This document shows, piece after piece, positions 1 to 50,751 of a stretch of 64,000 nt of DNA. The stretch's first letter is position 1. Each line of letters opens with the position of its first letter. The notes under the pieces were generated by a model that saw only the letters and a program-made list of their open reading frames with translations, had not been told where the DNA came from and did no database searches. This DNA comes from Ophelia neglecta. Its lineage: Eukaryota. The translations under genes were made by a program, and so were the position numbers. The stretch covers positions 63,612,001 to 63,676,000 of the forward strand of contig OZ260661.1 of the NCBI GenBank assembly GCA_965285935.1, written 5' to 3'.

Positions 1-161
1 GCTGTGGTAATCTGGAGGGCCAGCTGGCCAAGTGGCAGGCCTTCACAGAGTGCCACATGGCTCTCCAACAATGGCTTGGAGCTGTAGAGGATGAGCTGAA
101 AATGGGAGTGGAGCCTAAGGCGGAGCTAACTGAAAAGAGGGCTCAACTGGAGAAGTTTAAG
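1..161 (+). CDS. SYNE1: nesprin exon w1 (5'-truncated by window)
   Basis: Frame from nt 3: CGNLEGQLAKWQAF...QQWL...QLEKFK; donor AAG|gtattt, phase 0. Confidence 0.9.
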
Positions 162-3100
162 GTATTTGTCAATACACTGTGTCCAAGCCACAACAACTGA
201 GTGATTTTATCAATATCCTTGTTTACACATGTAGAATCTCATAAAGCATGATGGTTGGTTTTACAAATGGTAATATATATCCTTGCTGCTAAGTGTTTGC
301 ATGCAGCATTAAGTGTGCAAGTATTGAACACAAGTTCATATGATTGTATTGTGACAGGATTATTGATTTTTCAGGCTTACATTCTTGCTAATCCTTTACC
401 TGGTGTGTGTCTGTACATGGGTATTTTACTCATGATCTCTCACTTGCTTCTCTAAAATGTGCAGGAAAAATGCTGGTTGTTGAACTTTGTGAAAGTCATA
501 TACTTGCATGGCTATCTCTACAAGCACCTGGCACTAAAGATAAGCCTCAGACATTAAGATACATGTGTGTATGCCCGTGTATGTTATACAGTGGAAATTG
601 ATGGTAAATTAAGGATAATCATGGCCTGTTGAGTGACGGCCCCGCAGTATGTCCAAGGATGTTCCATTTGGCATATGTAGTAAAAGTGTGTAAGAAGGTT
701 GAAGTACATGCCAATCAAAGGTTAAGTGTTTTGAGATAAAACTTGTGTTTGGCCTTGGTAGCCTTATTTACTACAGCGTGTTGACAAATGATCTCACATT
801 ACAATGATAGAGATTAGAAAAAAATAGATACCCATACATATGTGTAAAGAAGATGTTATATGATGCATTATGGGACATTGTCCATGTTGGTGCTGCCTGT
901 GTGTTAATAATTTCTCTGGGTTTTTCTCTGCAGTCGCTGCTTGCTAATCTCAGCAGTCACCATGAGCAGATGGACGAGGCGGCGGGCCTGGTGGCCCAGC
1001 TGAAGGACAGCTGTCCAGACAAAGATCTGGCCTCCCAACTCTCTGACCTACAGCAGAGACATCAACGGGCCCAGGAACAGGTCCAGGTAAGATCACTGCA
1101 CAGGCTCTCTACAGTCAGTGGCAACCCTACCATAGCTCTCTGGCTTGTTTACATATAAGTTTAGCATCAGTTGAAAATTTATATAGTGAAACTCAATCCG
1201 CAGAAAGCAGGGGAGGTTTTGATGTATACACTGCGTTAGTAATCACATTGTTTGGAATTACAGTTTAAAGTAGATGTATATTTGCCAGGTCTCTGTTACA
1301 AGTAGTGTCAAAGCTAGTGCTGCACCAATGTGCAAAGTTCAGTATAAACCTCAAGGACTGTAACTACTTTTGTTTTGTGATATTTTGTCAGGAGAACATA
1401 GCCAGCTTGAAGAGTGCCTGTGAATTACAGAAGTCCTACCGGGAAGCTCTTCAGGAGTGTGAAAAATGGATACTCCAGATGTCCTTCAAACTCATGTCTC
1501 ACAACACACTAGATGTCAGCACTATCGAAAGAACACAACAACAAATCGAAAAGCACCAGGTTAGTATTAATATATGGGGTTGCATTATACTACTTGTTAT
1601 TTATACTCAAAACAAAACTGCATCATTGTGACATATTATTATTTTCCAATGTTTTTTATTGGGTTATCCCATTTTTACATAAATCCTAATTGTGTTAGCT
1701 TTTGTTGGTCCATGGCATGACGCTAATTTTACAAACTCTTTGAAAACTATGACATGTCTGTTGTGTTGTTTGTGCCTCAGGAGTTGCTGGCTGAGATTGA
1801 TGTGTACCAGAGCCAGTTAGACAGTGTGAGGGAGCAGGGAGAGGCTCTGATCACGGAGAGCCACCACCTGCCCTCCTTGGTGCAGCAGACGGAGACCCAG
1901 CTGGCCAACATGGAGGAGAGCTACCTCTCACTGCAGGCCACCGGCACACAGATCAAAGTGAGTCACTGCGATAGTCAGCATCAGATAACACAAAAAAGAA
2001 CAACTATTCTAGGCTCATTTTCAGCTTTATAAACTTAACTGGCCATTTTATATGACTTTGGAGGACACAAAAATACCCTAGGTCCAAACACAAACAAAAT
2101 TTACCTAATTGATACCTATTGAATCTATGTCTTCACATTCAATTTTCTTTCACCCACTACTCTTAAAACAAATGTGACAATGACCAGAGTTATGTTTTCA
2201 CTTTCACTGGTACACTGTTCCAAGGTTGCAAACTACTTCATACCCTTCTGACAGGGACAATACATATAGTACAATACAATAAGATGAATATAGCAAGTGA
2301 TCTTACGAGGGATCTTTGCTGTCTGTGAGCAAGGTAACCACTACAGGGAACTAGCCCAATTCAGGCCATGATGGGACTAAATGTTTTTTTTATCAACAAA
2401 GCAAGGAGAACCTAGATCTAGCTTTTCTCTAGCATTTGTGTGCCACAGTTAATACTCTTTAATATAAACAATGTCTTTTTTATCAAAGTATCATGATTGA
2501 GCATCCATACAAGAACTACTGGCCATGTGTGCCTCCTAAGAAGACTGTATCACACCAGCACCACTGAGTATGGTAACGGCAGATACTGTACCCCTCAAAA
2601 TATGATGAAATATTTCCCCAATTATTCTGTTATATAGTCTTGTTGTATTCCTCAGCCATGGAATCTTGTTCATGTGAAGCAAACTGTTAATGTTGCAATT
2701 GTGTCTAGTTTCACGACAGGATGCTGGGAAACATTATGTCTTATTCTAACTTGGGAACAGTATGTCATCTTGACAATAACTGTTGCTTTTATTTCAGGTA
2801 CCTTTTCTGTTTTGAATTTGAAATACATGTACAACAGAGGTGGTCTTTGTACTTCTTTAAATAAACTCACATGATAAAATATGGCTATGGCTATAGACAC
2901 ACACTCAGTAATATATTGAAGAATCATGTTCATAGCTGTGAGAAATCTGCCAGTGTAACTATGCTAAAAAATTGTGGGTTGTTATGAAGGATATGGCATC
3001 TTCCGGCACCGTGCTCAATGGTGCGGGTGTGATAATGACTTATTTGTGATTCAATAGCTTCATTAAGTACACTTGTGGCCCTCACGCTAGCGACTTTTAC

Positions 3101-6100
3101 AAGTCTTAGTGAGGGTCTCCCTGGTCAAGTGTTATATTGTAAATTCATACAACCTTTATCAATTATTGTACATGTTAGACCAAATAAATTATATCTGAAT
3201 TATATCTGAATCATTATATTAATTAAGGTTTAAATACAGCCATTTGTATGATTTAATATTAACATTCTGTCTCCATGAGTCATTGAAGATCATTCACAAG
3301 GAAAAACAGAAGAAATACCTTTTTTTATGAATACTATAATCACAATACTACAGTATAGGCAATGCTTAGAGTTAACATACTTCAAGACTTACAGTTTTTG
3401 TTGGCTTAAGAAGTGTATCATAATATACAGCAGACACTTTGAAAGACACTTCTATTTAATCCATTAAAAACACCTTTTATTACAATAAATCCTTCCTCCT
3501 CAGACAATGAGTTTCCTATTTTGCTGATTGATGAGAAAAAACCCTTCTAAACCTGTTCAAAAATAAATGGTTGTCAATAAACATTTCCAGAATATAATTT
3601 TTTGGCTTATGGTGCTTTAATAGTGCAAAAATGTTGCTATGTTTTAATGCTTACAGGCAGCAGGGACAGCCTTCCTGCTTAACTAGTTGATTAGTCAATC
3701 CAAGTACATGATGTATGCCATTTAATTTCAGTCCTGTCCTAAAGTATCATCCCTACTGTCTATCCAGGTTCATGTACAGTGTACAAGTACCTCAACTGAT
3801 GTTAAAATGTCTTGTCTAGCTGAGCACATACCGGGCATGTTGATGGTTTTAGCCTAGTGTTGTCCTCTTTGCATACCTATCAGGTGTACACCATTCATTA
3901 ATATGCAAGCTGTGTTCAATACTAGACTTTAAAACAGTATCTTGGCATGTCCCTCTTGACTCTGTCAAAACTGCTGTTTAGATTGGTCGTGTGCTTACTG
4001 GGGTTCAAAAATGACACTAAAATCCCCTTCGTGTACAATGTTCTAGCGGATTATTGGCTTTTTTATATTAAAGGTGTGAAATTGTTTCTTAGTTTTTGGG
4101 AGAAAGTTCACACAGTTTTGTTTGTGGAAGAGGCTATCATATTCAATAATGCTCTTGAGCAAGTAAAAACACTTGAAAGGAGTACCGGTATGTGTAATCA
4201 TCCAAACGGTGAATATGTCGTTGATCTATTTTATGCGAAAATTACAGGAAAAGGTGGGTATTTTCTTACTTTTTGTGAAGTTCATAATGTTTAAACTTTT
4301 TGTTCAGAGGCCTTTTGCTTTGAATTGTGAATATGAATATATATATATTGGGATATTTAATGTCAATAATGTTTTTGTTAGATCTATTATCAGAGGCAAA
4401 GGAGTACATGTACTTGTATACTTGATGCGTGTATTAACGCAGAATTATTATGTAGCTGTACATATATGTACACAAATAACCATGTACTGTATGATACTTA
4501 TACCTTGACTACACTTCAGGTATCTTCTTTAAACTTTGACAAACTATAGGTTTGGTAAATATGCTTGCTATGACTTGACTGGCTATCCAATCAAAAGCTC
4601 CACAGCATCCAAATTTTAACATATCTGCTTTGGTCAACTTACATTGTATATGAAATGAGAGAAAAACAATTCAGCGGACATGTACCTACTGCTGGTTAGC
4701 CAAAACAGAATTATTGGCTTGTTATGGCAATAATGATTGTTCTTGGGAAGCCATGCTACATGTAGATTGATTTTCACTCTGGTGGCTGGGGTGTTGTTCC
4801 TTCACCTGCCCAGGTTAGGCTTGGTGAATTTTGTCTCTAGAATATGTTTGGGTTGTGCAGTGTCTACAAGTGTTCATAAATGTGAGATTATCATTGAATT
4901 TGTCAGTAGGTTGTCCCTACCCCTCCTTTTCACCCACTGTGATGTCTGCCCCCACTCCAATACCCTCCAATGGTTCAGACCTGTATATATTTAGTACAGA
5001 TGTGACTGGGTTTTTGTTAGAATTCCTCACCTAAACAGGTGCCATTCAGTTTGCCTGCTTAAAATTAAAGTGTTTTTGGCTCACATTCATGTAACCCCAA
5101 TTGTTATTATGCTTGTGCGCCAAGTTTTCTATTGAAGTACAATAAGTCATGCACAAAGTGCAATAAGTCAGGTGCAATCTTTGCCGCCACAATGATTGGT
5201 TTGCTAGACACATGCTTAGACCTGTGAAAGTGGAATCAATGTTCTGATTGATCTTGTGTAGGTGAAAAAAAATACTCCATTATTATAATAATGTTAGCTG
5301 TAAGTGGCCGTGTCCACCTGGAATTGTGTCACACTTTAATATCATGGTCCACCTATTTCCTTATTGGTCTTTAATAAATATCCCTTTATTTAGAAGTGAT
5401 TTCAATATGGCCCTCCATCTGAATGTGATTGAAGACTTCTTTGATCTAGCCCAATAGATTTGAATGTACATTCTCAGTCTTCTCTTGAGAGTTAACTGCC
5501 CACTTGGGCCTACTTAGAAACTTAACTCACTGTATAGAAAAAGCCAATTATTAAAGCTCAGTAACTTCTCAAGAAAGTTAATGGAAAAATTAAATTTATA
5601 TCATGATATCAATTGAGTTTGGGATAGATACTAGGTCAACGTTCAGTCTGTATTTCACTGATGTTATAGGAGGAGTACAAGGTGGGAGAAAATGTAGGGT
5701 GCCAGCTTATTGGAATGCCTTATTCTTGGCCTTCATAAGTGTTATTGGTTATATATACATGTACAGTGAAACCTGTCTTAAAGACCACCTCTATAATCAG
5801 ACCACCTGTCAATTCAAACCACCAGTAAGAAGATGTAAAATAATCTGTATAAACAGACCACCTCCAAAATCAGACCAGTATTCTCCAGTCCCTTTGGTTG
5901 GCTAAATTTACAGCTTTCACTGTACTTGTAATGTGTGATTCAAGCCACTTGCTACCCATTTGAGTTTCAGGTTTTCCATTGCCTTCAGCTGTTATTGAGT
6001 CCAGTTATAGGATGTGTTTTCTCCATGATTATTAATGCCTTTCTGTTGGCCTGTTACAGGAGCGTTTGGGAGAGGTCCTCAGTAAGTGGCAGCAGTACCG

Positions 6101-9100
6101 TGACCTACTCTACCAGTGTGATGAGTACACCAGTGGGGAGGTGCTGCCTTGGCTCGAGGAGACACAGACTTCTCCGGCTACTAGTGGAGTCCAGCAGGCC
6201 AGAGAGCAGAACATTGCCAAGGTAACAGTTGTATTCTATCATGCAATCCTTCATTGACAGATATGTAATGTCTACCGAAGCAAAAAACTGTGGGCTCTCC
6301 AAAATAGTTTATGTATTGATGTGAAACTGGTCAGTTGCAGTACCTAACTACAGTCAATGGACCTCTCTGTATAATTGACAAACGCTTATGTATGGAGTTT
6401 TTTGTAATATTTCAGGACATGCTGGACACCTTATGTAAGTACAGACAGGATATCAACAACGCTGCCAACAAATGTGAGAATCTTAGCGGCCCCGAGGATG
6501 TCTCCTCAGAGGAGCGCTGCAGCACCCCTCTCTTTGAGAAGGCTTCCAAGGTCAATGAAAACCTGGACCAGGCCATTGAGAATCTAGAAGACACTCTGGC
6601 CAGGATGAGAGAGAGTGTGGTCCAGTGGGAGTCAGTGGACAAAATGAAACTGGAGCTCTCCAACTGGCTGGTGAATAAGACAAGAGAAGTTAGTCAAGCT
6701 GAGGAGAAGCCAGCCAAACTTCACATTGAGGCTGCAGAACTGGATGTTACCCATCTCGAGGTATACGGTTGAATAAAATGGCTTTTCCAATATTTGAATC
6801 TTATGTCTCATTATGATAGTGGTGTACCTCTGTTGACCTTGATCACTGACTCGTTGTTCATTACATTTGCATCACAGGAGCTTCAAGATGAAATCAAACA
6901 GAAAGAACCCACCCTTGAAAAGTTACAGACCAGATACAGTCGTCTGTCCAATGAGGACCCCAGCCTGGCCGAGTCCCAGGTGGGTCCTCTCAGAGAGACC
7001 TGGGGGGCTCTGGTACAGCAGCTGGAGACCCACTTACAGAGGAGACAGCAGTTCTTGGACCATTCTCGGGCCTATCACCAGCAGCATGCTGATGTCAACT
7101 CTAATATAGACCACATAGTTGGTGAAGTGGAGCGTGTACAGGCTCATGAGGAGGACTCCCTGACAGACAGAGTCACCTACCTCCAGGTAAGAACACTATT
7201 CTGCCTTAGTCTGCCATCCAATACATTTATGATATTAAGAAGTAAAAGAGACAATAATTGTAGTATATACTGTACTATATAGTAAAAATAATTGGTATCT
7301 AATTTAGGAAAAATAATCACTAGTATAGTGTAGTATGTACATATATTGTAAGGCAAATAAAAATATCCAAGACACTGCATTGCTATGGCATTCCATGGTT
7401 TTGTGTTAAACCTCTGCCACTTAAAGAACACATAAACAGTCTAATAAGTTGTCTGCCTTGGTCATATCATTTTAATTTCCTACTAAGTGATGTGGGTGCA
7501 TGCTAAAGTGAGGATTTCCCAAACATGTAGTATTAGAGTCCCTCTATAGTGTCCAAATCCAGTGCTTTGACTAGTATAAAAATGTTAGGCTTCTCCCATA
7601 TATTTCACCATTAATTTTCAATTGCCAGGTTTTCAATACTGGGTGTGTTGTAGAGGTTAATGCTTCTAGCTCTTAAGATTTAAAAAATAGTGTGCCATTT
7701 GGCTCCATAGGCTTTGCAATGTGATTCCATTCAAGAAGTGTGAAGTGGCCCACTCTGAGCATACAAAAGCATGTTTGGTTTTGAGTTTGCCCCTTGTATG
7801 CAAGATGCAGTGAAGCATGTTAATAGCTGGCACAAAACCCTACCCTCCCGTTCATGGTTAGGGCTGTACATTGTTACATAGTCAGTAGACATAACCCTGT
7901 GTTACAGTAGTAGTTTAGAATGCTTACTAGTAGTACTGCTGTACCCTGTAGTATAAGGTAGTACATTGATCACCTTAATAGTCTGTGCTGTGTGTGTCCG
8001 ACGGTTATTGAGTGCTGTTTTGTATTATCTTCTGTATTCATCACTTACATTATCACTTAGGTACTAAGAAGTTATCCATGTCTCATAGTATATATGTAAT
8101 TACTGGGTAAACTACTGACATCAATGTTAATTAACTATAATCTAATGTGTATATATGACCCTAACCCTTATCCATTGTGTACTGAGCCGGTGAACTCAAA
8201 CCTGGTCTAACTCTCACTGATTACATTAATATAAAGAACAAGATTACACTATCTCTACACATAGCTATGTCACATGGATAAGTCTTAAAGTTGTCAATAA
8301 AAAGGTCAGCTGATATTAACTGATTCTACAAGCCAAGGAGATTAGGTCTCTAAGCAGAACTTGATTTAAAAGCAAAGCTCATAATTATTCTATTGACAGT
8401 TCCCTGAATTTTTTTGTCCTAGAACTGATAAAATTTAATTAGGTGTCTTGACTCCTTGTCTCATCAAAGCAATGGAGTAAAAAAAAGGGAATTCCCCTAC
8501 AAGTGTCAGTTTAATCATTAGATATAATGATATAATGATATAATTTTCTTAATTATCACATGCCCAACACCATTGTGTAATTATCATGTCCAGTTCATTT
8601 AGCTATTAATTTTTCAACTACAAAATTATAATGAAAGTGCTTCAGTCATACTTGTTTGATACAAGAACAGTAAGTTAGGTAGATAAAATAATTTGATAGA
8701 AGAAAATGATGACTTGAAAGGCCCAATATACTCTTTTTTTTAATGTTTAACAGTAATGTAAGTGATGATACCAGTTTATAAGTTATTAAACTCCATACTA
8801 CCGTTTGTTCTGTTTTGCTTTGACCTTCATGTTTTCTGACTTTGGCTTAAATTCCAAATTTCAAATGAAGCATGTTTGTTCATTTGATGGCCACACTTGC
8901 TGTGTACTATTCTCAGTGTTTTCCTATCATACCTTTCCTATATGATCACTATCCCTGAAATTAATTGTAGATTATCTAATGCATGTGAAACCGTGTTTAA
9001 TCACATCTGTTAACATGCCAGTGCCTACATCTGTTAATGTACATCTTGTATTTGACTCTACACTTACCCCTTGACTGTTAGACACATTCAAAGGAGGGTA

Positions 9101-12100: not shown

Positions 12101-15100
12101 TTGCAAGCAATACTTCCTGAGAAATTCCCAACTTATCAGTGACAATGAAAGTGTTGATTAACAAACAGTAACATAATTGATGCATATAAGAAATGTTGGT
12201 TGATATGTATATGATTAATATGGGTAGAGTTATTAGTCACACCATATTTTTTGATATCAGGTATTTGCTCACATTCAAAATAAACTCTGGCTAGTTTGCA
12301 CTGAAAAAATATATCTGTGTAGGTGGTTCAATAATTTAAATGTGATGTTCATTATCTGCCCCTGCACTGTTTTCTTGGACAGAATAACTTTGCATTAAAT
12401 GATTGAAGACTTGTCTGACTATTGTAGTTGAGGTATTGACTTTAGAGAAAAGTACATAATTCATGTACCACCACGAGGTGAGTTATCTTTTTGCCCAGTG
12501 TGTACTTGAGTTAAAATGGGCGGTTGAACATGAAAAGAAAATATCTGTAAATATAGCCTAGCCAACTTTGTAGATGATAATGTTTACACAGTTGTTGTTC
12601 AAAGTACAAGAATTTATGGGCCTTACAAGGGTTTCTATGATATAGGTACTCCAAACATCACAGGTATTATACAGATGGTGTTACCAGTAAACCCAATGAG
12701 TGGATGACTTACTAGGAGCCATGTCCAATGAATACATGTTAAATAGTTAAATAGATTGTGAGATTCAGTAGTGTGTTTTTCTCTGATCACTGAATTGGTC
12801 TCTAATGCATTTCATAGATTATTATAGCAAGAGAATACAAGATACATGCTTCTGACATAGGTCCTGTAGAATTGCTTTATACTGAAAAAAAAGTGAAAGC
12901 TTATTTAGTGTTATAATAGGCCTTCATCAAATCAAAGAGCTCGCATGCTTTGAATTTACAAATCAGCTTTCATCACTTTGACAGTGGTTGTGGAGTACAG
13001 TTGATAGGATTAGACAACCAACAGCCTTTTAGTGAAACCTTCTCCTAGTGTAAGAGGTGTTTGACCTTATCTCGGTGAATGTCATGTGTGGAACTTGACT
13101 GATATCATAATATATGTGAGCAAATCCTGATATCTTGGTGTTGATATTGATGTATGTACTTCAAAATCTTGTAATAAACCTATGTCTTACACTGAGGTTA
13201 ATTAACATACATATTTATTTTTTCTTATTTAGGGAGGAGGCAACAGTGTCAGTTTTCAGGAACCATTGGGATTTTCTAGAGATTTTTCAACACAGACTCC
13301 ATCCAGTACACATCGAAGGCCAGAGTCTGCTCCAAATCCTCGTAAAAGGAACTCATCCACTGGGAAGAGCTCACCAAGCCGTATTCCCAGACCTGCAAGT
13401 AGTCGCTCACCATCAGCTTCTCCAGATAGGAACAAATCAAATTCCCCTCAGCGCAGTAAAATACCTAGACGACTTAGCAATACCTCAGCCCACTCTAGGT
13501 CACCCAGTAGGTCACCGGTTAGACCCAAATCTAGGTCACCCAGACCTAGCCCCAGAGGAGTTAACAGAAGTCCATTCAGAGGGCAAGGTGATGACAAACC
13601 ACAGCCACCTGGTGCAGGTGGAGCTATAGCTAAATATCCTGTCAAATCTGACCTTACTGGGACAGCTACTGCTGGTAACCGCAGGAAACTACCAGATATT
13701 ACCAGAAACGGGCAAGGCCAGACAAACAGAACTGTAAGTACTGGACCAAAGTTTAAGAGTCCAAGCAGGACATCAGACCACTCTGTGTCACCTGGTAGAA
13801 GTAGAAGCGACTCCCTTATTCCCAGAAGAACCAACTCGCCAGCCAGCAGGAGAAGTGTAGACAGTGGACGCTCCTCTCCAAGATCTGTAAGATCATCAAG
13901 ATCGGCAACTAGGCATCCTCGAAAATTGCCTAGACCAGGTAGCAGTGCCACTTGTGCTGCAGGAGACTGGGAAACTGATGATTCTGAATCTGGCTATGGC
14001 GATATTATTCATGCTGTGGGCACAGATCATCAGTCTGAAGATGACATAGCTCTTATTCCAAGCCTTGAACAAGATCCATCAAATAGGTCTTGTACTATAG
14101 TTGAGGTTCAGCCAGAACATTTCTTTTCAGCAGGAGCTCAGGGACCATATGAAACGAGAGGAGTGACATTTGCTGAGCATGAGAATATTACTATAAGACC
14201 CTTGGCACAAGTGTACATAACAACTGATGAGTCTTCTGATGAGTTAGCAGTGCCAATACTACATGCCAGCAACAGCAACAGTTCCCTTCAAACTTCTCAG
14301 GATGATGTATTACAGGCTGTTCTGGAAGCTGACAGAGCAATGCAAGAAATGATGGCATCAGGAGCAGCAGCATCTCAGTTTAGAATACAAGCTAGTGATA
14401 CAGATAGTTGGTACAGGAACCCTACTGAAGGAGTGACTGTAGAGAATGGAGAGCCAGTGAGGGTACTCCTGCTCGACCATGAGGCCCAAACGTCTTCTCT
14501 GACCGACTCAGCTAAACAGGCACTTAAAAAACCAGCATCAGGTCAGCAAAGTTCTGGAACCATGAACAGTGGTCAGCAGTGGAATACACCTGAACCAACA
14601 CTGACAAGGGTTAATGTTATATATGACAACAACAGCAATTTAAGACAAGAAGCGCCATCTCATGCTGAGAGTCAGTCTATTAGAGGAAGGTCTTGGTTAG
14701 ACGAAAATCAAGGAAACGACAATGCGCGGAGACAACTTGAAGTTGTAGAACATGAAGTAAATCTCTCAAGACATGTGCTTAAACCTAACACAGATTTAGA
14801 CTCAGAGGATGAAGGGCCACCTGAAGAAAACCCTCATCAAGACTTGGATGGTACTTTAGACAATGAGGATGTTGAATCCTGGTATTCAGGCATCACAGAA
14901 CCAGAGCCTGACACGGTGTCCTCTACATGTGATTCTGGCACCCAGACAATGAGACACAGAAAGACCCAAACACAGAATTTGGAAGATGGTGCCACACAGA
15001 CATCTGCTCACCCAAGGAGAAGGAAACTTCCCTCAGTGCCCGGAGCAGGGTACGACACCGATGATGGAACTGCGAGTGTTCTGTCCCTTGACAGCAGCAC

Positions 15101-18100
15101 TTCAGAACGCAATGCACAGAGAGTACCAAACTCAATGACTGGCCTGCAAGACAAGGAAAGGGTCAGCAAGCTGAAAAGGAGGTTGCCATGTGTTAATGCC
15201 CATGCAAATGACATGATGGAACCAGATAGTGAGTCAGAAGGTATTGGAACAAATAGTGCCCTGATGAATACCATTCAGTATGCTGGCATTAACTCATTGC
15301 GAAACACCAGCCAATCAGGACAAAGTTCTCCTAGACAACCTATTCTAGGGGGTTCGCTGCCCCTACAAGCCACTAGGGACAGGGTCCAACAGCCAAGGTA
15401 TATAAAGGAGTATCAGAAGTATATAGAATCTTTTGAAGGAACAGCCAGTGGTCCTTTCACTCCAGGTGCCTATGAGGAACCACTTGAGGACACTTTATTT
15501 AGGAACGGTAACAGCACTGCACAGTCTTACCATCATGATATGCAAATTCCATCACATCACCAAAGACAGAGAAACTATGAATCAATGCCCAACACTATGC
15601 CACAAGATTCTGCCGGTGAAGCTGGAAATTCTCAGAATATCATGATGCCACAGACAATGGATGCTTTATATAATCGTTCTACCCAAACTTCTCCTTTTCA
15701 GAGGCCTAGAAACTTTAGTAATGCCTCTGATGGCTCTAGCAGGAGGAGACCCATGTCAGCAGGCATGGTTAAAAGTGATTCCATGAGTGATAAGGAAAAT
15801 AGGAGGCCAAAGACTAGCACAGTAAGAAATAGTCAGACTTTAGATGTGCCTTCTTCCACTTTTGATAGGCTGTTTAGTGGTGGACCTCAGTCAATGGCAG
15901 CACGATCCCCCCAGATGCAAATGTCTAAGGAGAGAGCACGTTCCTGGGATGTGATTGATACATCAGATGGACCAGCATCTGCTTACTCTTCAATGAGAGA
16001 TTTTGGGCAGCAAACCCCAATAACCCACTCGACTCAGACTCCGCTGAGAATAATGCTGGGTTCCAATGGCGATGGATTACCAAGAGGAACGATCAGTGTG
16101 GGGGATACATTAGTGTTTGATAGAGACGCCAATGCTCACACAGTTATACAGCCATGGAATGTCATCAGTCCACTAGACCTAGATATTACTGCAGCACGTG
16201 ACTTTGCCACTCAGACCTTTGGACAGATGCATAACATGTCTCATTTACATGTTCAAACTCAAACTCAGGAGAGTGGTATCTCAAGGGTCAACACAAACAG
16301 TGGGTCTAACTTGACTGTCAACACAGACAGAGGATTTACATTGGAGGCGGCAGACAGACATTACTCTCCAATGCATGCATTCAATGAATTTGAAAGGCAA
16401 ACAACTCCAAGGCTCCTACAGCAGCCACCAGTAACAGAATATAACATTCCTCATATGCAGCCAGAAATGTCTCAGAGACAGCAACTAGATGAAATGCACA
16501 GGCAACCAACTCCCTTTCAGGCCTATCAGGCTCCCACAGGACAAGAGAGGCCTCTACAGGAGAGTCACACTTCTCCTAAAACAGGCTTGCCAAAACAGAC
16601 TATTACACCATCACAACAACAGTCAGAACACGAGGAAGAAGAATCCAAAGATATATTCGAAGAAAAAGCCAAGAAACATCATAAGCGGGACAAGTCCAAA
16701 AGATCTCCTGAGAGGAATTATAACGATAAACAGTCAGAAACTACAGCTCAGTCCAACATGAGTCGAAAAGACATATTGAAATTCATGTTAAGCCAGGTGA
16801 AGGAGCTAAGGAGGCAAATTGATCATGATCCTGAGGAGAGCAAACATGTGCCCAGGAAAGAGAGCAAAGTGAAGAAGCCTAGTAAAAGCAAAGAAAAGCC
16901 ACTTAAGCGCAGAGAGCAGAGTGAAGAAAGAGAACCGCTTGAAGACCCTGACAAGCTGTACACTAAGAGAAGAATAGAGCAGATGTACAGTCACAACCCG
17001 CATAGAGGCACTGAGCCTGAGCCTGACAGACGCCACAGGAGGCGCCACAGTATAGAGAGCTACATCAGTGAGAAAGATGATGTTGTGGAAGGCAGAAGTG
17101 CTAATGCTAGGGATCATTACCTTAAATTCATCAGGGATAGATATATTCCAAGGAGAAAATGGAGCCAGAGCCGTGAGGAGCCTTATTTCTCTCGGCCCAG
17201 GGAAAAGGCCCCCCCTAGGAGGGCTTTGACTCCTCCGCCTAGAAGAACCCCTCCACCGTTTTCCAGGTATATTCCAAATTATCCAGGAATGGGGATACCA
17301 ATGGGTAGGGAGGTTCCCCCTCACAGGAGACAGTTACCTCAGGTACCAGTCAGAGAGCGTAGCTTTCCCCCACCACAGGCCCCTCCTATGAGACCGCCCT
17401 TCTTCCAAAGTCCTTATCCACATAGAATGCCCATTACTCAACAGCATTTCATGCCAAGCAGAATGGCACAACCTCCTCCTTATATGGTTTCTCAACAACC
17501 AATGCCATTTACCCAAGGAATGCCACCTGCAGTGCCAGTCCAGTTGGGTCAGGGAGCCTTCAGGCCAATCAGCATGCAGGAGGCCCAACGTATGGGAACC
17601 CCAGTACAGGGAACCCCAGTGATGCTCCTCCCTTCCTCCCAGGTACCTGCCTCCCCGCATGCTCCATTCATAGTTATAGCCAGCCCCTATAGATATGAAA
17701 GTGTCAGTGACAGTGCCCCAGAGGGAGGGGAGGGAATGACTCGCACACGTCAATCCCGCCCTTCCTCTTCAAAACACAGGGATGGGGAGAACTCCTTTAG
17801 TAAGGCTTCTCGGGCCGCCAAGGAAATGAAAAACCTCACCGAACGGCTCCAACGCTCTACTCCTAGGAAATGATTTGGGCTCAGTAGAATAGTACCTATT
17901 ATATAAATGTACTTAAAATATTACTATTTCAGGTATTTTTTGCCTATATTGTTGCTTATCATATAATGATTATAAGAACAGAAAATGTAAATTTACATCT
18001 TAATTTTCATGAATTTCAACTGAGTGCAGACTTTGTGTATTAATGTCTATCAGTTGTTTATGTTTTAAAGCTTGGTATTACAGACTACTTCACCATTATG

Positions 18101-48100: not shown

Positions 48101-50751
48101 GTTCAATCATTGATTAATACATTTTTATCCCAAGGCATAATATGGGTGGGTGGTCTTGTAAACCAACTAATTACAACATATGGCCTTGGAAACACTTTCT
48201 TTGTATGCCTATGAACAAATAAACAAGAGTAGGGAAAACTCAAAAATACAAGGCAGAACAAACCTACCAATTTCAGTTTAGAACTTTCCTCCTTTGAATC
48301 TAAACTTGATTCCAAATTTCATTTGTAATCTGTTGTGTCATGTGAAGTTTCCCTGTTAACACACTGTAGTTTAGTGAGATGCACATTACAGTAAGATCAC
48401 TGTGAGACTGGAGCAGACGCACCTTGGTGAAAAAAGGGTGTCCCACAGGTAACATGTATGAGGTCAATGACAGAGAAAAATGGCCACCTTCTAATCATTG
48501 ATCACTTTGATTGTTTCTAGCTTGTTGCCATGGCACCTACCAGCACTTTGTTGGGACCAGATCAAGATCTAGACAAGTATATATACTGCTTTTTTCTCTA
48601 ATAGTCCTTTTTTTTTTAATTTTGTAACAAGATTTATGTTAACCGAATATAATTTTATTGGTGTTGGTTGGAATGTTAGGTCATTTACCAGTTGCATGAA
48701 TGCCAGATACATTTTAAGTTCAGCACTAACTACATATAAGACGAGGAACTTAGTTTTAGTGGACATCAGGTAGGGATCAGTTTAGAAGCATGAGAATGGT
48801 ATGGTATTTACATGTACATGTTTCCCAAGACAGTTAGCATAGGGCTTGGTAATACCTTAAATCATACATGTATGTGAGCTATGCGGCTCAATGTTACTGT
48901 GTCGCTGGCCAGCTTCTAGAAATACTAATACAACTGTCTCTGCTTACATTATAAATAACAACTGTCTTTACTTTAATACTAACACATCTTAACTTCCTTT
49001 CTAGCATCCAGCTATGCAGCATTCAGCTTCCATTTATACATTTGTCGCTTTTTTTTATGTTTATTTGATTTTTTTCACATTTAGGCGCCTGCATGTATGC
49101 CAACATCATTTGTGATTTCTGAGGCTCCTAGGTATTATATATTAACAAGTCATTTGGTATTTTCTCTCTCTGCCACATTATCTTATTCCTAACACACTGT
49201 AGTATATACTTTTTTGCAGCTTGTATTTTGTTCCTTAATATGCATGTGACATTTATCCACTCATTCTTTTTTTTCAGTTTCATTTTATATTTATTTTATA
49301 CTGAAGTTCGTAGAGATACCCGGTGGCATCGCATGACACGCTTCTTAATGTAAATGAGCTATATAACTGTTAATATACAAAATGCATTGAGTTAGGCAGT
49401 AGCTACCTGAGTAGATTGCTACCAACCCAGCCCACAATTAGTAAACCAATGTCTAAACTTTCACAATTTAATTTACATGTAGGTTTTAATGAATGGCATG
49501 CACATAAGACTAGGAATTGCACTTTGAAATTTCTTGAAAGTTATGCACCTGAAAGACACATATCCATGTTCTATTTGTCACTGTTGCTTTCTATGTTATA
49601 TTCATGTTGTCAGATATAGATTGATACAAAATCAATATTATTATTAAAAGTTAGCGGTAAAGAAACTAAAACAATGATAGTAATTTTAAAAATATTTATG
49701 TCACTTGGCTTTTAATACAGCTCATATTTTTTGTCACAAGTAGTAAGGCCATTTTTGTAAGAACTGTGGATTCCATCAGCCAGAATGGAAAGAAGCTATA
49801 AGTAAATGCAAAAAATTAACAAACATGCACACATGAAAGTACCTTAATAATTACAAATAACTACCAGAGGTTGGAAAACGATTAAAGCCATGTCAGACTA
49901 TATACACATGCTTGATGAGATCGTGCAAACATGCAAAACATCATCAAACAGCAAAATTTATCTGTATAAACAAGTAAAGCAACAAGTAAAAGTTTGTTTA
50001 TGGCTGATTTAAGAAGTTGTGCAAAAAGGTATGTGTAGGTGCTCACTGAAGAAAACCACAGTTTTAACAAATTGTGGCCTAAACTGCATTTTAGCACTGC
50101 ATGAAAAGCCAAACTCAGTCTGTTGTATGCTACCAATGTCCTTAAGTGAAAAATACATTACACCAATAACAATATGTAATATGGATGTACATGCATGTCA
50201 CAGAACCTTGATATGTCCTAGATATGAAACCTCTCTGGTTTTAAGTCAATTAAAATCAGAAAATGTTAGTTAAACATAATATATGTGAGTGTAAAATGGG
50301 TATCAAATTGTTCTGTTGTCATTTTCATTTTGCATTTTCGAGATTTTGTGTGCAACTTGTTCTCCTCCTCCTCCAAATTACCCTATCTATCACTTTTAGT
50401 AGTTTTGATGCTTTAACAGTCAACATATTTATGTAGTCTCAGACTTTCACTGAAAGCAAGCCATTATTTAAACATGCTCGTGTGAATGAATTGAACATGA
50501 ATTCTTCTTTTTCTTGCAGTATTGAACGGGGCATAGGCTCCTCAGCATTAGCTCGGCGAAGACGTAGATATGGATTTATCGCTAGAGTGTGTAGAGCTGC
50601 TCTGCCGATACAGATGCTAATGTTACTACTACTGGGAGTGGCATGCCTTGTTCCCATGACGGAAGAGGATTTTAGTTGTTTCATTGCAAACAACTTCCGA
50701 AGTTCATTTGATCCGATGTTAAACTATCCGGATGGACCCCCACCATTTTAA
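1..50751 (+). CDS. SYNE1: Giant nesprin-1 (SYNE1/MSP300-like) spectrin-repeat KASH protein, 3' portion; 5' end lies outside the window; 43 exons traced
   Basis: Exons with GT(GC)-AG boundaries join in frame into tandem spectrin repeats. Segments closely match vertebrate nesprin-1 as I recall it (QFQAEIFSRQQILHSII; IEKHSTGVASVSNLCEVLLRDADAC...LDKRWRNICALSTERRMKIEETWRLWQ; LEELNKQYRHLAREGRTD). The protein ends in a KASH domain with PPPF*. Confidence 0.95.
934..1086 (+). CDS. SYNE1: nesprin exon w2
   Basis: ctgcag|SLLANL...QEQVQ|gtaaga. Confidence 0.9.
1392..1559 (+). CDS. SYNE1: nesprin exon w3
   Basis: gtcag|ENIASL...EKWI...IEKHQ|gttagt. Confidence 0.9.
1781..1957 (+). CDS. SYNE1: nesprin exon w4
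   Basis: ctcag|ELLAEID...TQIK|gtgagt. Confidence 0.9.
3040..3212 (+). mobile_element. Probable 3' end of a LINE/SINE (CR1/L2-like tail)
   Basis: Stem-loop ccctcacgctagcgactt-ttac-aagtcttagtgaggg (3079-3115), then AATAAA (3183) and a short tandem tail (ttatatctgaa)x2; this arrangement is typical of non-LTR element 3' ends. Left boundary approximate. Confidence 0.45.
5764..5922. mobile_element. MITE, Tc1/mariner (pogo/Tigger-like)
   Basis: 13-bp TIRs cagtgaaacctgt / acagctttcactg (1 mismatch), flanked by TA on both sides; internal repeated gaccacct motifs. Confidence 0.8.
6060..6221 (+). CDS. SYNE1: nesprin exon w5
   Basis: ttacag|ERLGEVLSKWQQY...NIAK|gtaaca. Confidence 0.9.
6416..6760 (+). 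CDS. SYNE1: nesprin exon w6
   Basis: ttcag|DMLDTL...THLE|gtatac. Confidence 0.9.
6878..7186 (+). CDS. SYNE1: nesprin exon w7
   Basis: cacag|ELQDEIK...VTYLQ|gtaaga, phase 0. Confidence 0.9.
12463..12477 (+). CDS. Candidate internal first coding exon (MYHHE)
   Basis: ATG TAC CAC CAC GAG|GTGAGT, a consensus phase-0 donor; in-frame TAA 6 nt upstream of the ATG; compatible with acceptors at 13233 and 20607. Confidence 0.4.
13233..17873 (+). CDS. Giant 4.64-kb terminal exon (about 1,546 aa, disordered; SxIP, TQT and RxLPxxP motifs): alternative KASH-less nesprin C-terminus or nested gene
   Basis: Uninterrupted ORF of 1,546 codons; pyrimidine tract plus AG at 13231-32 in phase 0; GC content rises abruptly at the acceptor and falls after the TGA at 17873. 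Confidence 0.85.
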   Translation, partial: GGGNSVSFQEPLGFSRDFSTQTPSSTHRRPESAPNPRKRNSSTGKSSPSRIPRPASSRSPSASPDRNKSNSPQRSKIPRRLSNTSAHSRSPSRSPVRPKSRSPRPSPRGVNRSPFRGQGDDKPQPPGAGGAIAKYPVKSDLTGTATAGNRRKLPDITRNGQGQTNRTVSTGPKFKSPSRTSDHSVSPGRSRSDSLIPRRTNSPASRRSVDSGRSSPRSVRSSRSATRHPRKLPRPGSSATCAAGDWETDDSESGYGDIIHAVGTDHQSEDDIALIPSLEQDPSNRSCTIVEVQPEHFFSAGAQGPYETRGVTFAEHENITIRPLAQVYITTDESSDELAVPILHASNSNSSLQTSQDDVLQAVLEADRAMQEMMASGAAASQFRIQASDTDSWYRNPTEGVTVENGEPVRVLLLDHEAQTSSLTDSAKQALKKPASGQQSSGTMNSGQQWNTPEPTLTRVNVIYDNNSNLRQEAPSHAESQSIRGRSWLDENQGNDNARRQLEVVEHEVNLSRHVLKPNTDLDSEDEGPPEENPHQDLDGTLDNEDVESWYSGITEPEPDTVSSTCDSGTQTMRHRKTQTQNLEDGATQTSAHPRRRKLPSVPGAGYDTDDGTASVLSLDSSTSERNAQRVPNSMTGLQDKERVSKLKRRLPCVNAHANDMMEPDSESEGIGTNSALMNTIQYAGINSLRNTSQSGQSSPRQPILGGSLPLQATRDRVQQPRYIKEYQKYIESFEGTASGPFTPGAYEEPLEDTLFRNGNSTAQSYHHDMQIPSHHQRQRNYESMPNTMPQDSAGEAGNSQNIMMPQTMDALYNRSTQTSPFQRPRNFSNASDGSSRRRPMSAGMVKSDSMSDKENRRPKTSTVRNSQTLDVPSSTFDRLFSGGPQSMAARSPQMQMSKERARSWDVIDTSDGPASAYSSMRDFGQQTPITHSTQTPLRIMLGSNGDGLPRGTISVGDTLVFDRDANAHTVIQPWNVISPLDLDITAARDFATQTFGQMHNMSHLHVQTQTQESGISRVNTNSGSNLTVNTDRGFTLEAADRHYSPMHAFNEFERQTTPRLLQQPPVTEYNIPHMQPEMSQRQQLDEMHRQPTPFQAYQAPTGQERPLQESHTSPKTGLPKQTITPSQQQSEHEEEESKDIFEEKAKKHHKRDKSKRSPERNYNDKQSETTAQSNMSRKDILKFMLSQVKELRRQIDHDPEESKHVPRKESKVKKPSKSKEKPLKRREQSEEREPLEDPDKLYTKRRIEQMYSHNPHRGTEPEPDRRHRRRHSIESYISEKDDVVEGRSANARDHYLKFIRDRYIPRRKWSQSREEPYFSRPREKAPPRRALTPPPRRTPPPFSRYIPNYPGMGIPMGREVPPHRRQLPQVPVRERSFPPPQAPPMRPPFFQSPYPHRMPITQQHFMPSRMAQPPPYMVSQQPMPFTQGMPPAVPVQLGQGAFRPISMQEAQRMGTPVQGTPVMLLPSSQVPASPHAPFIVIASPYRYESVSDSAPEGGEGMTRTRQSRPSSSKHRDGENSFSKASRAAKEMKNLTERLQRSTPRK
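18687..18771 (+). terminator. Polyadenylation signals for the 13233-17873 exon
   Basis: AATAAA at 18687 followed by a GT-rich run (tgtttgttgtttgttgtt), and AATAAA at 18766, after about 0.8 kb of T-rich UTR-like sequence. Confidence 0.5.
19402..19511. repeat. Degenerate tandem repeat, 3 x 35-40 bp
   Basis: aaacaagatcaaaga(t/c)gt core in units starting at about 19402, 19442 and 19477. Confidence 0.8.
20607..20725 (+). CDS. SYNE1: nesprin exon w8
   Basis: ttacag|KLSSKLEESRASVDEMV...DNI-ag|gtacaa, phase 0 to 2; not in the ORF track. Confidence 0.9.
21033..21240 (+). CDS. SYNE1: nesprin exon w9
   Basis: ttctag|c-TIQRKL...LHHHN|gtaagt. Confidence 0.9.
21350..21679 (+). CDS. SYNE1: nesprin exon w10
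   Basis: tttag|VLLQEIEAK...EGKK|gtcagc. Confidence 0.9.
21835..22304 (+). CDS. SYNE1: nesprin exon w11
   Basis: ttcag|TLLSEVK...EALN-ag|gtatgg. Confidence 0.9.
22327..22488. mobile_element. Degenerate TA-ended MITE (mariner-like)
   Basis: Left end tatcgtattctttataataagcgccca versus reverse complement of right end taccatcttctatgtgttaagtgcaca: 18/27 identical. Confidence 0.4.
22594..24394 (+). CDS. SYNE1: nesprin exon w12 (1.8 kb)
   Basis: tacag|g-VADTIQKE...LKKTK|gtatgt; several spectrin repeats. Confidence 0.92.
24674..24819 (+). CDS. SYNE1: nesprin exon w13
   Basis: ttccag|DATEAVAQSQPDL...DKFE-ca|gtgagt; not in the ORF track. Confidence 0.9.
25022..25205 (+). CDS. SYNE1: nesprin exon w14
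   Basis: ttcag|g-LQWKSK...MDKQQ|gtacag. Confidence 0.9.
25509..25817 (+). CDS. SYNE1: nesprin exon w15
   Basis: ttcag|ALKQEIK...KEKHQ|gtgtgt. Confidence 0.9.
26030..26353 (+). CDS. SYNE1: nesprin exon w16
   Basis: tgtag|ELLGDVSLFKPKLE...LEEQR|gtaaat. Confidence 0.9.
26730..27035 (+). CDS. SYNE1: nesprin exon w17
   Basis: ctttag|TLVAESNVH...LNAQE|gtattg. Confidence 0.88.
27594..27899 (+). CDS. SYNE1: nesprin exon w18
   Basis: tacag|KVVDEIE...IAEHN|gtacgt. Confidence 0.9.
29027..30289 (+). CDS. SYNE1: nesprin exon w19 (spectrin helix plus about 390-aa Ser/Thr-rich insert)
   Basis: ctttag|ALASQIRSWQSRVDEIN...GRSYQ|gtaatt, phase 0-0. Confidence 0.85.
30600..30683 (+). CDS. SYNE1: nesprin exon w20 (84 nt)
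   Basis: tttccag|WLSSSFRARPSTPLLDELNTSWHYLQQQ|gtattg; supplies the missing spectrin helix C; not in the ORF track. Confidence 0.8.
31666..31836 (+). CDS. SYNE1: nesprin exon w21
   Basis: tatag|VEEKDRQLNEAL...THME|gtaaga; not in the ORF track. Confidence 0.9.
32066..32248 (+). CDS. SYNE1: nesprin exon w22
   Basis: aacag|MLSVEL...QNQLG|gtaagc. Confidence 0.9.
32650..32814 (+). CDS. SYNE1: nesprin exon w23
   Basis: aatag|KAGEDRQK...IKENQ|gtcagc. Confidence 0.88.
33072..33203 (+). CDS. SYNE1: nesprin exon w24
   Basis: ttgaag|LLQGEVSEH...HNLQE|gtgacc (AAG acceptor). Confidence 0.82.
33333..33551 (+). CDS. SYNE1: nesprin exon w25
   Basis: tgcag|DTSQLK...EQLQK|gttagt. Confidence 0.9.
33665..33889 (+). 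CDS. SYNE1: nesprin exon w26
   Basis: NAGNAG acceptor tgcag|cag; QLGNDLTEH...NMPQ|gtttat. Confidence 0.85.
34062..35960 (+). CDS. SYNE1: nesprin exon w27 (1.9 kb)
   Basis: aacag|DFVGRD...LQKYR|gtaaga; spectrin repeats. Confidence 0.92.
36148..36501 (+). CDS. SYNE1: nesprin exon w28
   Basis: ttcag|GLKIDISNRELTVDFVNQS...LKECK|gtaagc. Confidence 0.92.
36611..37077 (+). CDS. SYNE1: nesprin exon w29
   Basis: ttccag|AIQDQM...AKE-ag|gtaagt. Confidence 0.92.
37285..37477 (+). CDS. SYNE1: nesprin exon w30
   Basis: tacag|a-WHRL...NNAR|gtaggc. Confidence 0.9.
37652..38284 (+). CDS. SYNE1: nesprin exon w31
   Basis: ccctag|SLQAAV... (alternative in-frame acceptor at 37661) ...HIYN|gtaagt. Confidence 0.88.
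38440..38766 (+). CDS. SYNE1: nesprin exon w32
   Basis: cacag|QFQAEIFSRQQILHSII...NNCK|gtaagt. Confidence 0.93.
40200..40520 (+). CDS. SYNE1: nesprin exon w33
   Basis: ttttag|ASQKDF...LQLCT|gtaagt. Confidence 0.92.
40673..40987 (+). CDS. SYNE1: nesprin exon w34
   Basis: catag|EYESAF...KIQH|gtaagt. Confidence 0.92.
41098..41766 (+). CDS. SYNE1: nesprin exon w35 (conserved 'star' region; GC donor)
   Basis: ttcag|EYKDEL...LRKYE|gcaagg. Confidence 0.88.
41991..42509 (+). CDS. SYNE1: nesprin exon w36
   Basis: ttaaag|NYQKKLHESL...RAERQ|gtaaac. Confidence 0.9.
42730..42948. repeat. Diverged tandem duplication, 2 x about 111 bp
   Basis: gattaa(a/g)ctgaa...tgtagtga(c/t)tttccaat...aaactatcaatagagt...agggtatgtg...gtagttttatt occurs at 42730 and 42841. 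Confidence 0.8.
43013..43141 (+). CDS. SYNE1: nesprin exon w37 (acidic linker)
   Basis: tttcag|TSDLDSPDSE...PLVLP|gtaagt, phase 0-0. Confidence 0.8.
44135..44375 (+). CDS. SYNE1: nesprin exon w38 (adaptive domain; LNWED)
   Basis: ctatag|VADDEEE...SLASLNWED...DEP-g|gtaagg. Confidence 0.88.
44634..45151 (+). CDS. SYNE1: nesprin exon w39
   Basis: ttcag|at-GKERW...VRRHR|gtaagt. Confidence 0.9.
45326..45655 (+). CDS. SYNE1: nesprin exon w40 (GC donor)
   Basis: cccag|EFLLQIENRKPVVLSINL...CIKFK|gcaagc. Confidence 0.88.
45795..46022 (+). CDS. SYNE1: nesprin exon w41
   Basis: tcaaag|DLKYDLETAQPRV...GAAS|gtaagt. Confidence 0.88.
46745..46849 (+). CDS. SYNE1: nesprin exon w42 (Ser/Arg linker)
   Basis: ttgcag|VSRVSLDGSEGYQSLRS...KSRP|gtaagt, phase 0-0. 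Confidence 0.78.
50520..50751 (+). CDS. SYNE1: nesprin terminal exon: transmembrane segment plus KASH domain
   Basis: ttgcag|t-IERG...FIARVCRAALPIQMLMLLLLGVACLVPMTEEDFSCFIANNFRSSFDPMLNYPDGPPPF*; Cys at -23 and PPPX terminus are present. Confidence 0.97.

Follow-up and report, generated by a model that had tools for sequence, protein, structure and literature searches.

In the worm Ophelia neglecta, a stretch of 64,000 nucleotides (assembly GCA_965285935.1, contig OZ260661.1, positions 63,612,001 to 63,676,000 of the forward strand; hereafter the window, whose own numbering is used throughout) contains a long open exon that has the appearance of an alternative last exon, devoid of KASH, in a nesprin gene of annelid type and whose N-terminal part, or head, carries two conserved motifs of the SxIP type, the short signals borne by ligands of the microtubule end-binding (EB) proteins. 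From their sequence, conservation and context, it is fairly probable that these two motifs are functional EB-binding signals, which would recruit the product of the terminal exon, most likely a nesprin rod deprived of its KASH domain, to growing microtubule plus ends. The exon head can be regarded as a credible new candidate for SxIP-type EB binding, with the restriction that a third, SxIP-like motif in the same head appears lineage-specific and is probably weak or non-functional.

Three SxIP motifs, namely SRIP (motif 1), SKIP (motif 2) and SLIP (motif 3), had been pointed out in a sequence-only reading of the window, and all of them stand where this reading had placed them, in frame within an open exon of 1,546 codons (Table 1). 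The stretch then described corresponds to the first 228 codons after a TTG within the longer open frame of exon 13233-17873, and its description as rich in Ser, Arg and Pro and poor in acidic residues is borne out for the head as a whole (residues 1-251), which is composed of 21% S, 15% R and 13% P, with 50 K+R vs. 15 D+E. It further contains 14 S/T-P sites and only five Ile, three of which are found inside the SxIP motifs. Based on an alignment of nine sequences, AlphaFold2 predicts the first element of secondary structure, a helix, only at residues 356-375, and the mean predicted local distance difference test score (pLDDT) per block of 10 residues ranges from 32 to 52 up to residue 350, which is consistent with a disordered head. 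Against composition-preserving shuffles, the three [ST]x[IL]P occurrences in the 251 residues of the head compare with 0.42 expected (p = 0.0065), and the single occurrence in the remaining 1,295 exon residues with 1.8 expected. When the heads of 12 homologous exons are pooled, 32 occurrences are counted vs. 5.3 expected, a number reached in none of 2,000 shuffles, and the remainder of these 12 exons is depleted in the motif (8 vs. 21 expected).

Regarding conservation, a word-based protein search retrieved 11 homologs, 1,067-1,526 aa long and with 27-57% identity, which are open reading frame (ORF) calls on eukaryotic contigs; nine of the homolog contigs were examined, and those frames whose ORF call began at an internal Met were extended to the acceptor found upstream. 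The resulting 12 exons were aligned with L-INS-i and conservation was expressed, column by column, as identity to the window. The head can otherwise hardly be aligned, its mean per-column identity being 0.23, and motif 1 is its most conserved 4-mer (0.94), [ST]x[IL]P being present at this place in 12/12 exons. In the ranking of 4-mers, it is followed by the overlapping RIPR and IPRP, then by two RKLP and then by TQT. Motif 2 is retained as [ST][RK][IL]P in about 10 of the 12 homologs, and it lies 21-31 residues from motif 1 in 10/12; its surroundings, SPQRSKIPRR, are identical in the closest relative (L002). Motif 3 has a column identity of 0.06, reads LSVP in this closest relative and is found as SLIP in no other homolog. 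The extended consensus given by the motif instances of the family can be written S-P-S-P-[ST]-R-[IL]-P-[RK]-P-V-x-S. A profile search against 1.84 billion representatives returned 38 clusters, the longest member being of 1,526 aa, and, among the more remote clusters (E 1e-5 to 1e-30), many still have a motif of the SR[IL]P type at their start, e.g. GSRLPRPVD, SSRIPRLIT, SSRIPLPVG, ASRIPVPLG or SSRLPLPVK. In the distant homolog L013, found on a metagenome scaffold, the head is Lys-rich and not Ser/Arg-rich, starting with KRPSQKPSKIPSRK...KKPVSRIPKPVG, and carries KPSKIPSRK and VSRIPKPVG. Besides, an extra TRIPRPVN or TRIPHPIK occurs deep inside the exon in two homologs, around residue 721 in L003 and residue 723 in P0007, with no counterpart at this place in the window.

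According to the sequence rules published for EB ligands, a core [S/T]-x-[I/L]-P lies within an unstructured, net-positive stretch enriched in basic residues, Pro and Ser; acidic residues are excluded from the nine positions surrounding the motif, and one or more of the four residues before it must be basic (PMC4834103). The nine-residue window being read here as four residues before the core, the four residues of the core and one after, motif 1 (KSSPSRIPR) and motif 2 (SPQRSKIPR) pass both clauses, and the head provides the expected context in being Pro/Ser/basic-rich, net positive and predicted as disordered. Motif 3 fails because an Asp at position -1 breaks the no-acidic clause; most likely, it is a chance occurrence or a recently arisen weak site. 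Over the pooled heads, the strict filter retains 11 motifs vs. 2.0 expected. As for how tightly EB proteins are bound, the residues just after SxIP, and then positive charge, were reported to drive a 'lock' step on the C-terminus of the EBH domain (PMC12695022), SxIP repetition or oligomerisation raises the affinity for microtubule tips and nearby phosphorylation suppresses EB binding (PMC4834103). The family consensus SPSP-[ST]R[IL]P-[RK]P-V resembles the sequences of proven EB ligands, namely CLASP1, MACF, whose EB-binding peptide is KPSKIPTPQRK, and CDK5RAP2, whose high-affinity EB peptide is KKSRLPRILIKRSR (PMC12695022). An exon encoding an EBH domain (PF03271, 69 bits) is present in the same genome. 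In that region, the EBH domain matches twice in full on the minus strand, the two matches being 72 nt apart (G000:C5:21481582-21481698 and 21481770-21481886; 68 and 69 bits; L014/L015), and they look like tandem alternative EBH exons of the worm EB gene, possibly mutually exclusive. Taken as a plus-end-tracking module, to be checked by the conservation of SxIP above its flanks in orthologous exons, the earlier proposal is supported in part, for motifs 1 and 2, both selectively conserved and in agreement with the published rules, but not for motif 3, which fails on both counts.

Several points weigh against considering motifs 1 and 2 as EB ligands. Many copies of the motif in the family, of the form SPSPSRIPRP, lack a basic residue at all four positions before the motif and fail the strict filter, so that this filter discriminates less than conservation in the present case. 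Motif 3 is neither conserved nor compliant with the rule, and the exon has a single annotated relative, a 'hypothetical protein' of the tubeworm Ridgeia piscesae that was modelled automatically. Because the 12 homologs are related, independence is overstated in the pooled shuffle test and its figure is not a probability; the real argument lies in the contrast of conservation between motifs and flanks rather than in the pooled count. Moreover, conservation extends past the core, with SP at positions -4/-3 and -2/-1, the residues after the core Pro being R/K (+1), P (+2) and V (+3). This last point, together with the many copies that fail the preceding-basic clause and the presence of further conserved short motifs in the same head (RKLP twice, TQT), would suit another partner of the conserved SPSP-SRIP-RP-V element, be it a proline-directed or GSK3-type phosphorylation cassette or some other reader of short linear motifs, the SxIP match then being coincidental. 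Such a coincidence is nevertheless unlikely in view of the invariant positions, which are exactly the S/T, I/L and P of SxIP with R or K as x, of the P then V that come after the core as in the proven ligand MACF (SKIPTP; PMC12695022), and of the hydrophobic and basic residues following the motif, which are those used in the EBH 'lock' step (PMC12695022). By inspection, readings of the SRIP element as an SH3 class I/II, 14-3-3 mode I or PP1 RVxF motif were rejected since the conserved positions do not fit.

With respect to the genomic context, the host gene is a nesprin, as a full KASH domain (PF10541) is encoded on the same strand as spectrin-type exons; it is not a spectraplakin. The exons were searched one by one, as separate pieces, and matches to Spectrin and Spectrin_SYNE1 were obtained on the plus strand on both sides of the open exon, upstream at 6335-7282 and downstream at 21820-42533. 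A strong phase-0 splice acceptor, ttttttcttatttag/GGA, directly precedes position 13233, the frame staying open onward to the stop at 17871-17873, and a comparable acceptor is found in front of the homologous exons at eight other loci. At the other extremity, a C-terminal amphipathic helix with the consensus A-x-R-A-A-x-x-M-K-x-L-T-x-R-L is common to 12/12 aligned homologs, and a stop without donor consensus occurs at the equivalent place in all six loci read at their 3' end (the window and five homologous loci). Because the conserved helix is followed by a stop and by no donor, the exon behaves as a terminal coding exon and, since this stop precedes the KASH exon, an isoform ending in exon 13233-17873 would be without KASH. 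Beyond the stop, the first AATAAA lies at 18687. As the exon opens with a phase-0 acceptor and lacks its own start codon, a partner upstream is required. At 7186/7187, the spectrin exon located upstream terminates in ...VTYLQ/gtaaga, i.e. with a consensus donor in phase 0, matching the phase of the acceptor at 13232/13233; we infer both that an upstream spectrin exon is spliced to exon 13233-17873 and which one of them joins it.

The need for an upstream partner also leaves room for a separate, nested gene within an intron of the nesprin, where the open exon would be preceded by a private first exon, e.g. the candidate MYHHE/GT mini-exon at 12446-12483. In its favour, all 38 clusters are limited to 1,526 aa or less and no giant nesprin model containing the exon figures among the representatives, but the short length of these database entries is uninformative as most are ORF calls on raw contigs. 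In addition to the consensus and phase-matched donor upstream, the exon has spectrin exons around it in no fewer than four genomes other than that of the window, which indicates a shared nesprin context. The Ridgeia model (NP493_470g03046; KAK2179831.1) is a true homolog, with 34-35% identity over conserved blocks, in which N-terminal spectrin repeats are joined straight to the orthologous exon with the same C-terminus; its residues 284-774 are colinear with window exons 9-7186 (tblastn) and its head contains the motifs SNIPRP and SRIPLA. It differs from the window in being an uncharacterised, automated and probably partial model of 2,001 aa and, being automated, it provides support for, and not proof of, the junction with spectrin exons. 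Altogether, a nested gene seems quite improbable, and it would in any case leave the EB reading unchanged. As to the motifs being functionless chance products of a low-complexity Ser/Arg/Pro sequence, SxIP is indeed short and degenerate and motif 3 behaves like a chance occurrence, but this is very improbable and already disfavoured by the conservation test, as motifs 1 and 2 are conserved where their flanks are not, three of the rare Ile of the head lie in the motifs, and the pooled enrichment is sixfold with the rest of the exon depleted.

If motifs 1 and 2 are EB ligands, what we infer for the exon product covers EB binding, tip tracking, lattice binding, avidity and phospho-regulation. Each of the two motifs would lodge in the EB1 EBH domain's hydrophobic pocket, with the following Arg, Pro and Val residues and the surrounding basic charge adding affinity. 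The tandem SRIP/SKIP pair would add avidity for the EB dimer, and dimerisation driven by LC8 via the neighbouring TQT sites could possibly add more. In this way, the spectrin-repeat rod spliced to the exon would be recruited to growing microtubule plus ends, perhaps also weakly to the lattice, and phosphorylation of the many neighbouring Ser-Pro sites would offer an off-switch. The first conserved TQT triplet, of LC8 type, precedes motif 1, TQTP and STQT ranking among the top 4-mers, and the triplets further along the exon (several sites in 13233-16265) are invariant or nearly so across the family, as exemplified by the consensus stretches GTQTPRHRTTQTPEDAxTQT and RDFSTQTFGQM..H.xTQT; the whole set looks like a multivalent array of LC8/DYNLL type beside the SxIP pair. 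More tentatively, and with greater doubt than confidence, it can be proposed that the isoform swaps KASH for a disordered tail of 1,546 residues, in which the SxIP pair is combined with an LC8 (TQT) array zipping two tails together, so that the rod captures or rides plus ends directly. If true, one protein would do the job that in flies needs a separate spectraplakin, namely Shot, beside the nesprin.

Table 1. Coordinates, in the numbering of the window, of the features discussed in the text.
Feature	Position	Strand	Basis and remarks
Upstream spectrin-repeat exon	6413..7186	+	Weak Spectrin_SYNE1 match; colinear tblastn of the Ridgeia model (P0045); phase-0 donor
Open exon, 1,546 codons, ~4.6 kb	13233..17873	+	Stop at 17871-17873; probably alternative terminal coding exon of the nesprin gene
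Disordered (predicted), basic Ser/Arg/Pro-rich head, residues 1-251	13233..13985	+	Composition; AlphaFold2; ends at the conserved ESGYGD anchor, 13986
First conserved TQT triplet (LC8-type)	13290..13298	+	26 residues upstream of motif 1
SxIP motif 1, SRIP	13377..13388	+	Context KSSPSRIPRPASS (SPSRIPRP)
SxIP motif 2, SKIP	13455..13466	+	Context SPQRSKIPRRLS (RSKIPRR); 26 residues after motif 1
Conserved RRKLP motif	13680..13694	+	RKLP conservation 0.78
SxIP-like motif 3, SLIP	13812..13823	+	Context RSRSDSLIPRRTN (RSRSDSLIPRR)
Second conserved (P)RKLP motif	13917..13931	+	RKLP conservation 0.81; aligned with RKRRKLPKV in relatives
KASH-domain exon	50575..50748	+	PF10541, 93.2 bits, E = 9.8e-24; G000:C1:63662575-63662748

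Besides the SxIP and TQT motifs, the two RKLP motifs are the most conserved element of the head after SRIP, and they may correspond to an element resembling a nuclear localisation signal or to another docking motif of the form [KR][KR]KLP. This basic element recurs three times in the exon, as RRKLP, as PRKLP and as RRRKLPSVPG near residues 596-602. At the C-terminal extremity (17760-17873), a PYIVIASPYRYESVSDS block precedes the amphipathic helix and the region has no transmembrane character. In one homologous locus (L004, 14582-14640), the last ~25 coding nucleotides (atcactgaaggactgcagaaacgtta) are tandemly repeated twice just past the stop of the P0002 exon. Two short contigs, L013 from a metagenome scaffold and L017 from a sequencing-run assembly, were considered as transcripts and rejected as such; because of their intron-like upstream sequence, they give no splice evidence. 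At the scale of the genome (762 Mb), exon 13233-17873 is single copy, and a paralogous copy in a second nesprin-like gene was rejected on this ground. Two more KASH-domain exons are found in this genome, at G000:C2:69968131-69968298 (84.5 bits) and G000:C1:86202774-86202932 (47 bits); these belong to other KASH proteins and, the giant exon being single copy, neither of them has a copy of it nearby. Over its whole length, the exon gave no match of any kind in a Pfam scan and no usable match in a feature search of the ESM Atlas, and a PDB sequence search with the family profile or with the head alone returned nothing meaningful. As 30 cluster look-ups yielded one 'hypothetical protein' from Ridgeia and one unnamed 'hypothetical protein', the exon family is essentially unannotated, and the SxIP finding gives a handle at the level of function on this family of 38 clusters.

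A search of the literature for an SxIP motif in a nesprin found no report, and a review dedicated to Shot mentions nesprin only as the partner of Shot around muscle nuclei. To our knowledge, nesprins organise perinuclear microtubules only via intermediaries, that is adaptors of kinesin or dynein, Akap450/AKAP6, or Shot with EB1. According to a study from 2015, a direct link between proteins of the LINC complex (nucleoskeleton-cytoskeleton linker) and microtubules had not been established (PMC4442817). If true, an isoform of nesprin that itself bears conserved signals for EB binding would constitute a direct link between nesprin and microtubules, and a nesprin gene could acquire a spectraplakin-like tip-tracking ability by switching its terminal exon. 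As a candidate, the exon head adds to the SxIP-type EB ligands in an unexpected host.

Among known EB-binding systems, the exon module can be compared with the regions of CLASPs and spectraplakins that bind EB proteins, like which it would work and to neither of which it is homologous. In CLASP1, SKIP (aa 718-721) and SRIP (aa 741-744) are 23 residues apart (PMC5566832), and the central region of CLASP1/CLASP2 shares with the worm exon both this close tandem of SKIP and SRIP (26 residues apart in the worm) and a location in a disordered stretch that is basic, rich in Ser and Pro and dotted with numerous candidate phosphosites, CLASP being under the control of GSK3 (cited in PMC4834103). In contrast, there is no homology outside the motifs, the worm exon is without TOG domains, its motifs come in the order SRIP then SKIP, and its host is a spectrin-repeat nesprin. 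The C-terminal tails of spectraplakins (MACF1/ACF7, dystonin and Drosophila Shot) resemble the worm module in that these are giant spectrin-repeat proteins with SxIP in a basic tail; S-K-I-P-x-P of the MACF peptide is held in common with the exon family, KPSKIP being found in the distant homolog L013. Unlike these tails, the worm exon has no GAS2/GAR or EF-hand domain before its motifs, since it has no Pfam match at all, and the neighbouring ORFs match only spectrin-type families. In addition, the worm gene ends in a KASH exon and the motifs stand at the start of the 1,546-residue tail and not at its end.

The closest parallel within nesprins themselves is to be sought in Drosophila, where the KASH-less isoform Msp300-PE recruits Shot and Patronin to a perinuclear non-centrosomal microtubule-organising centre (PMC11230431) and where MSP300 cooperates with Shot and EB1 (PMC4442817). 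As proposed for the worm, an alternative nesprin isoform has its KASH domain replaced by a long non-spectrin tail tied to microtubule organisation. Msp300-PE, however, is made of tandem repeats of ~100 aa, has a transmembrane helix at its C-terminus and takes an indirect route to EB1, via Shot, whereas the worm tail is non-repetitive, unrelated in sequence and would bind EB directly.

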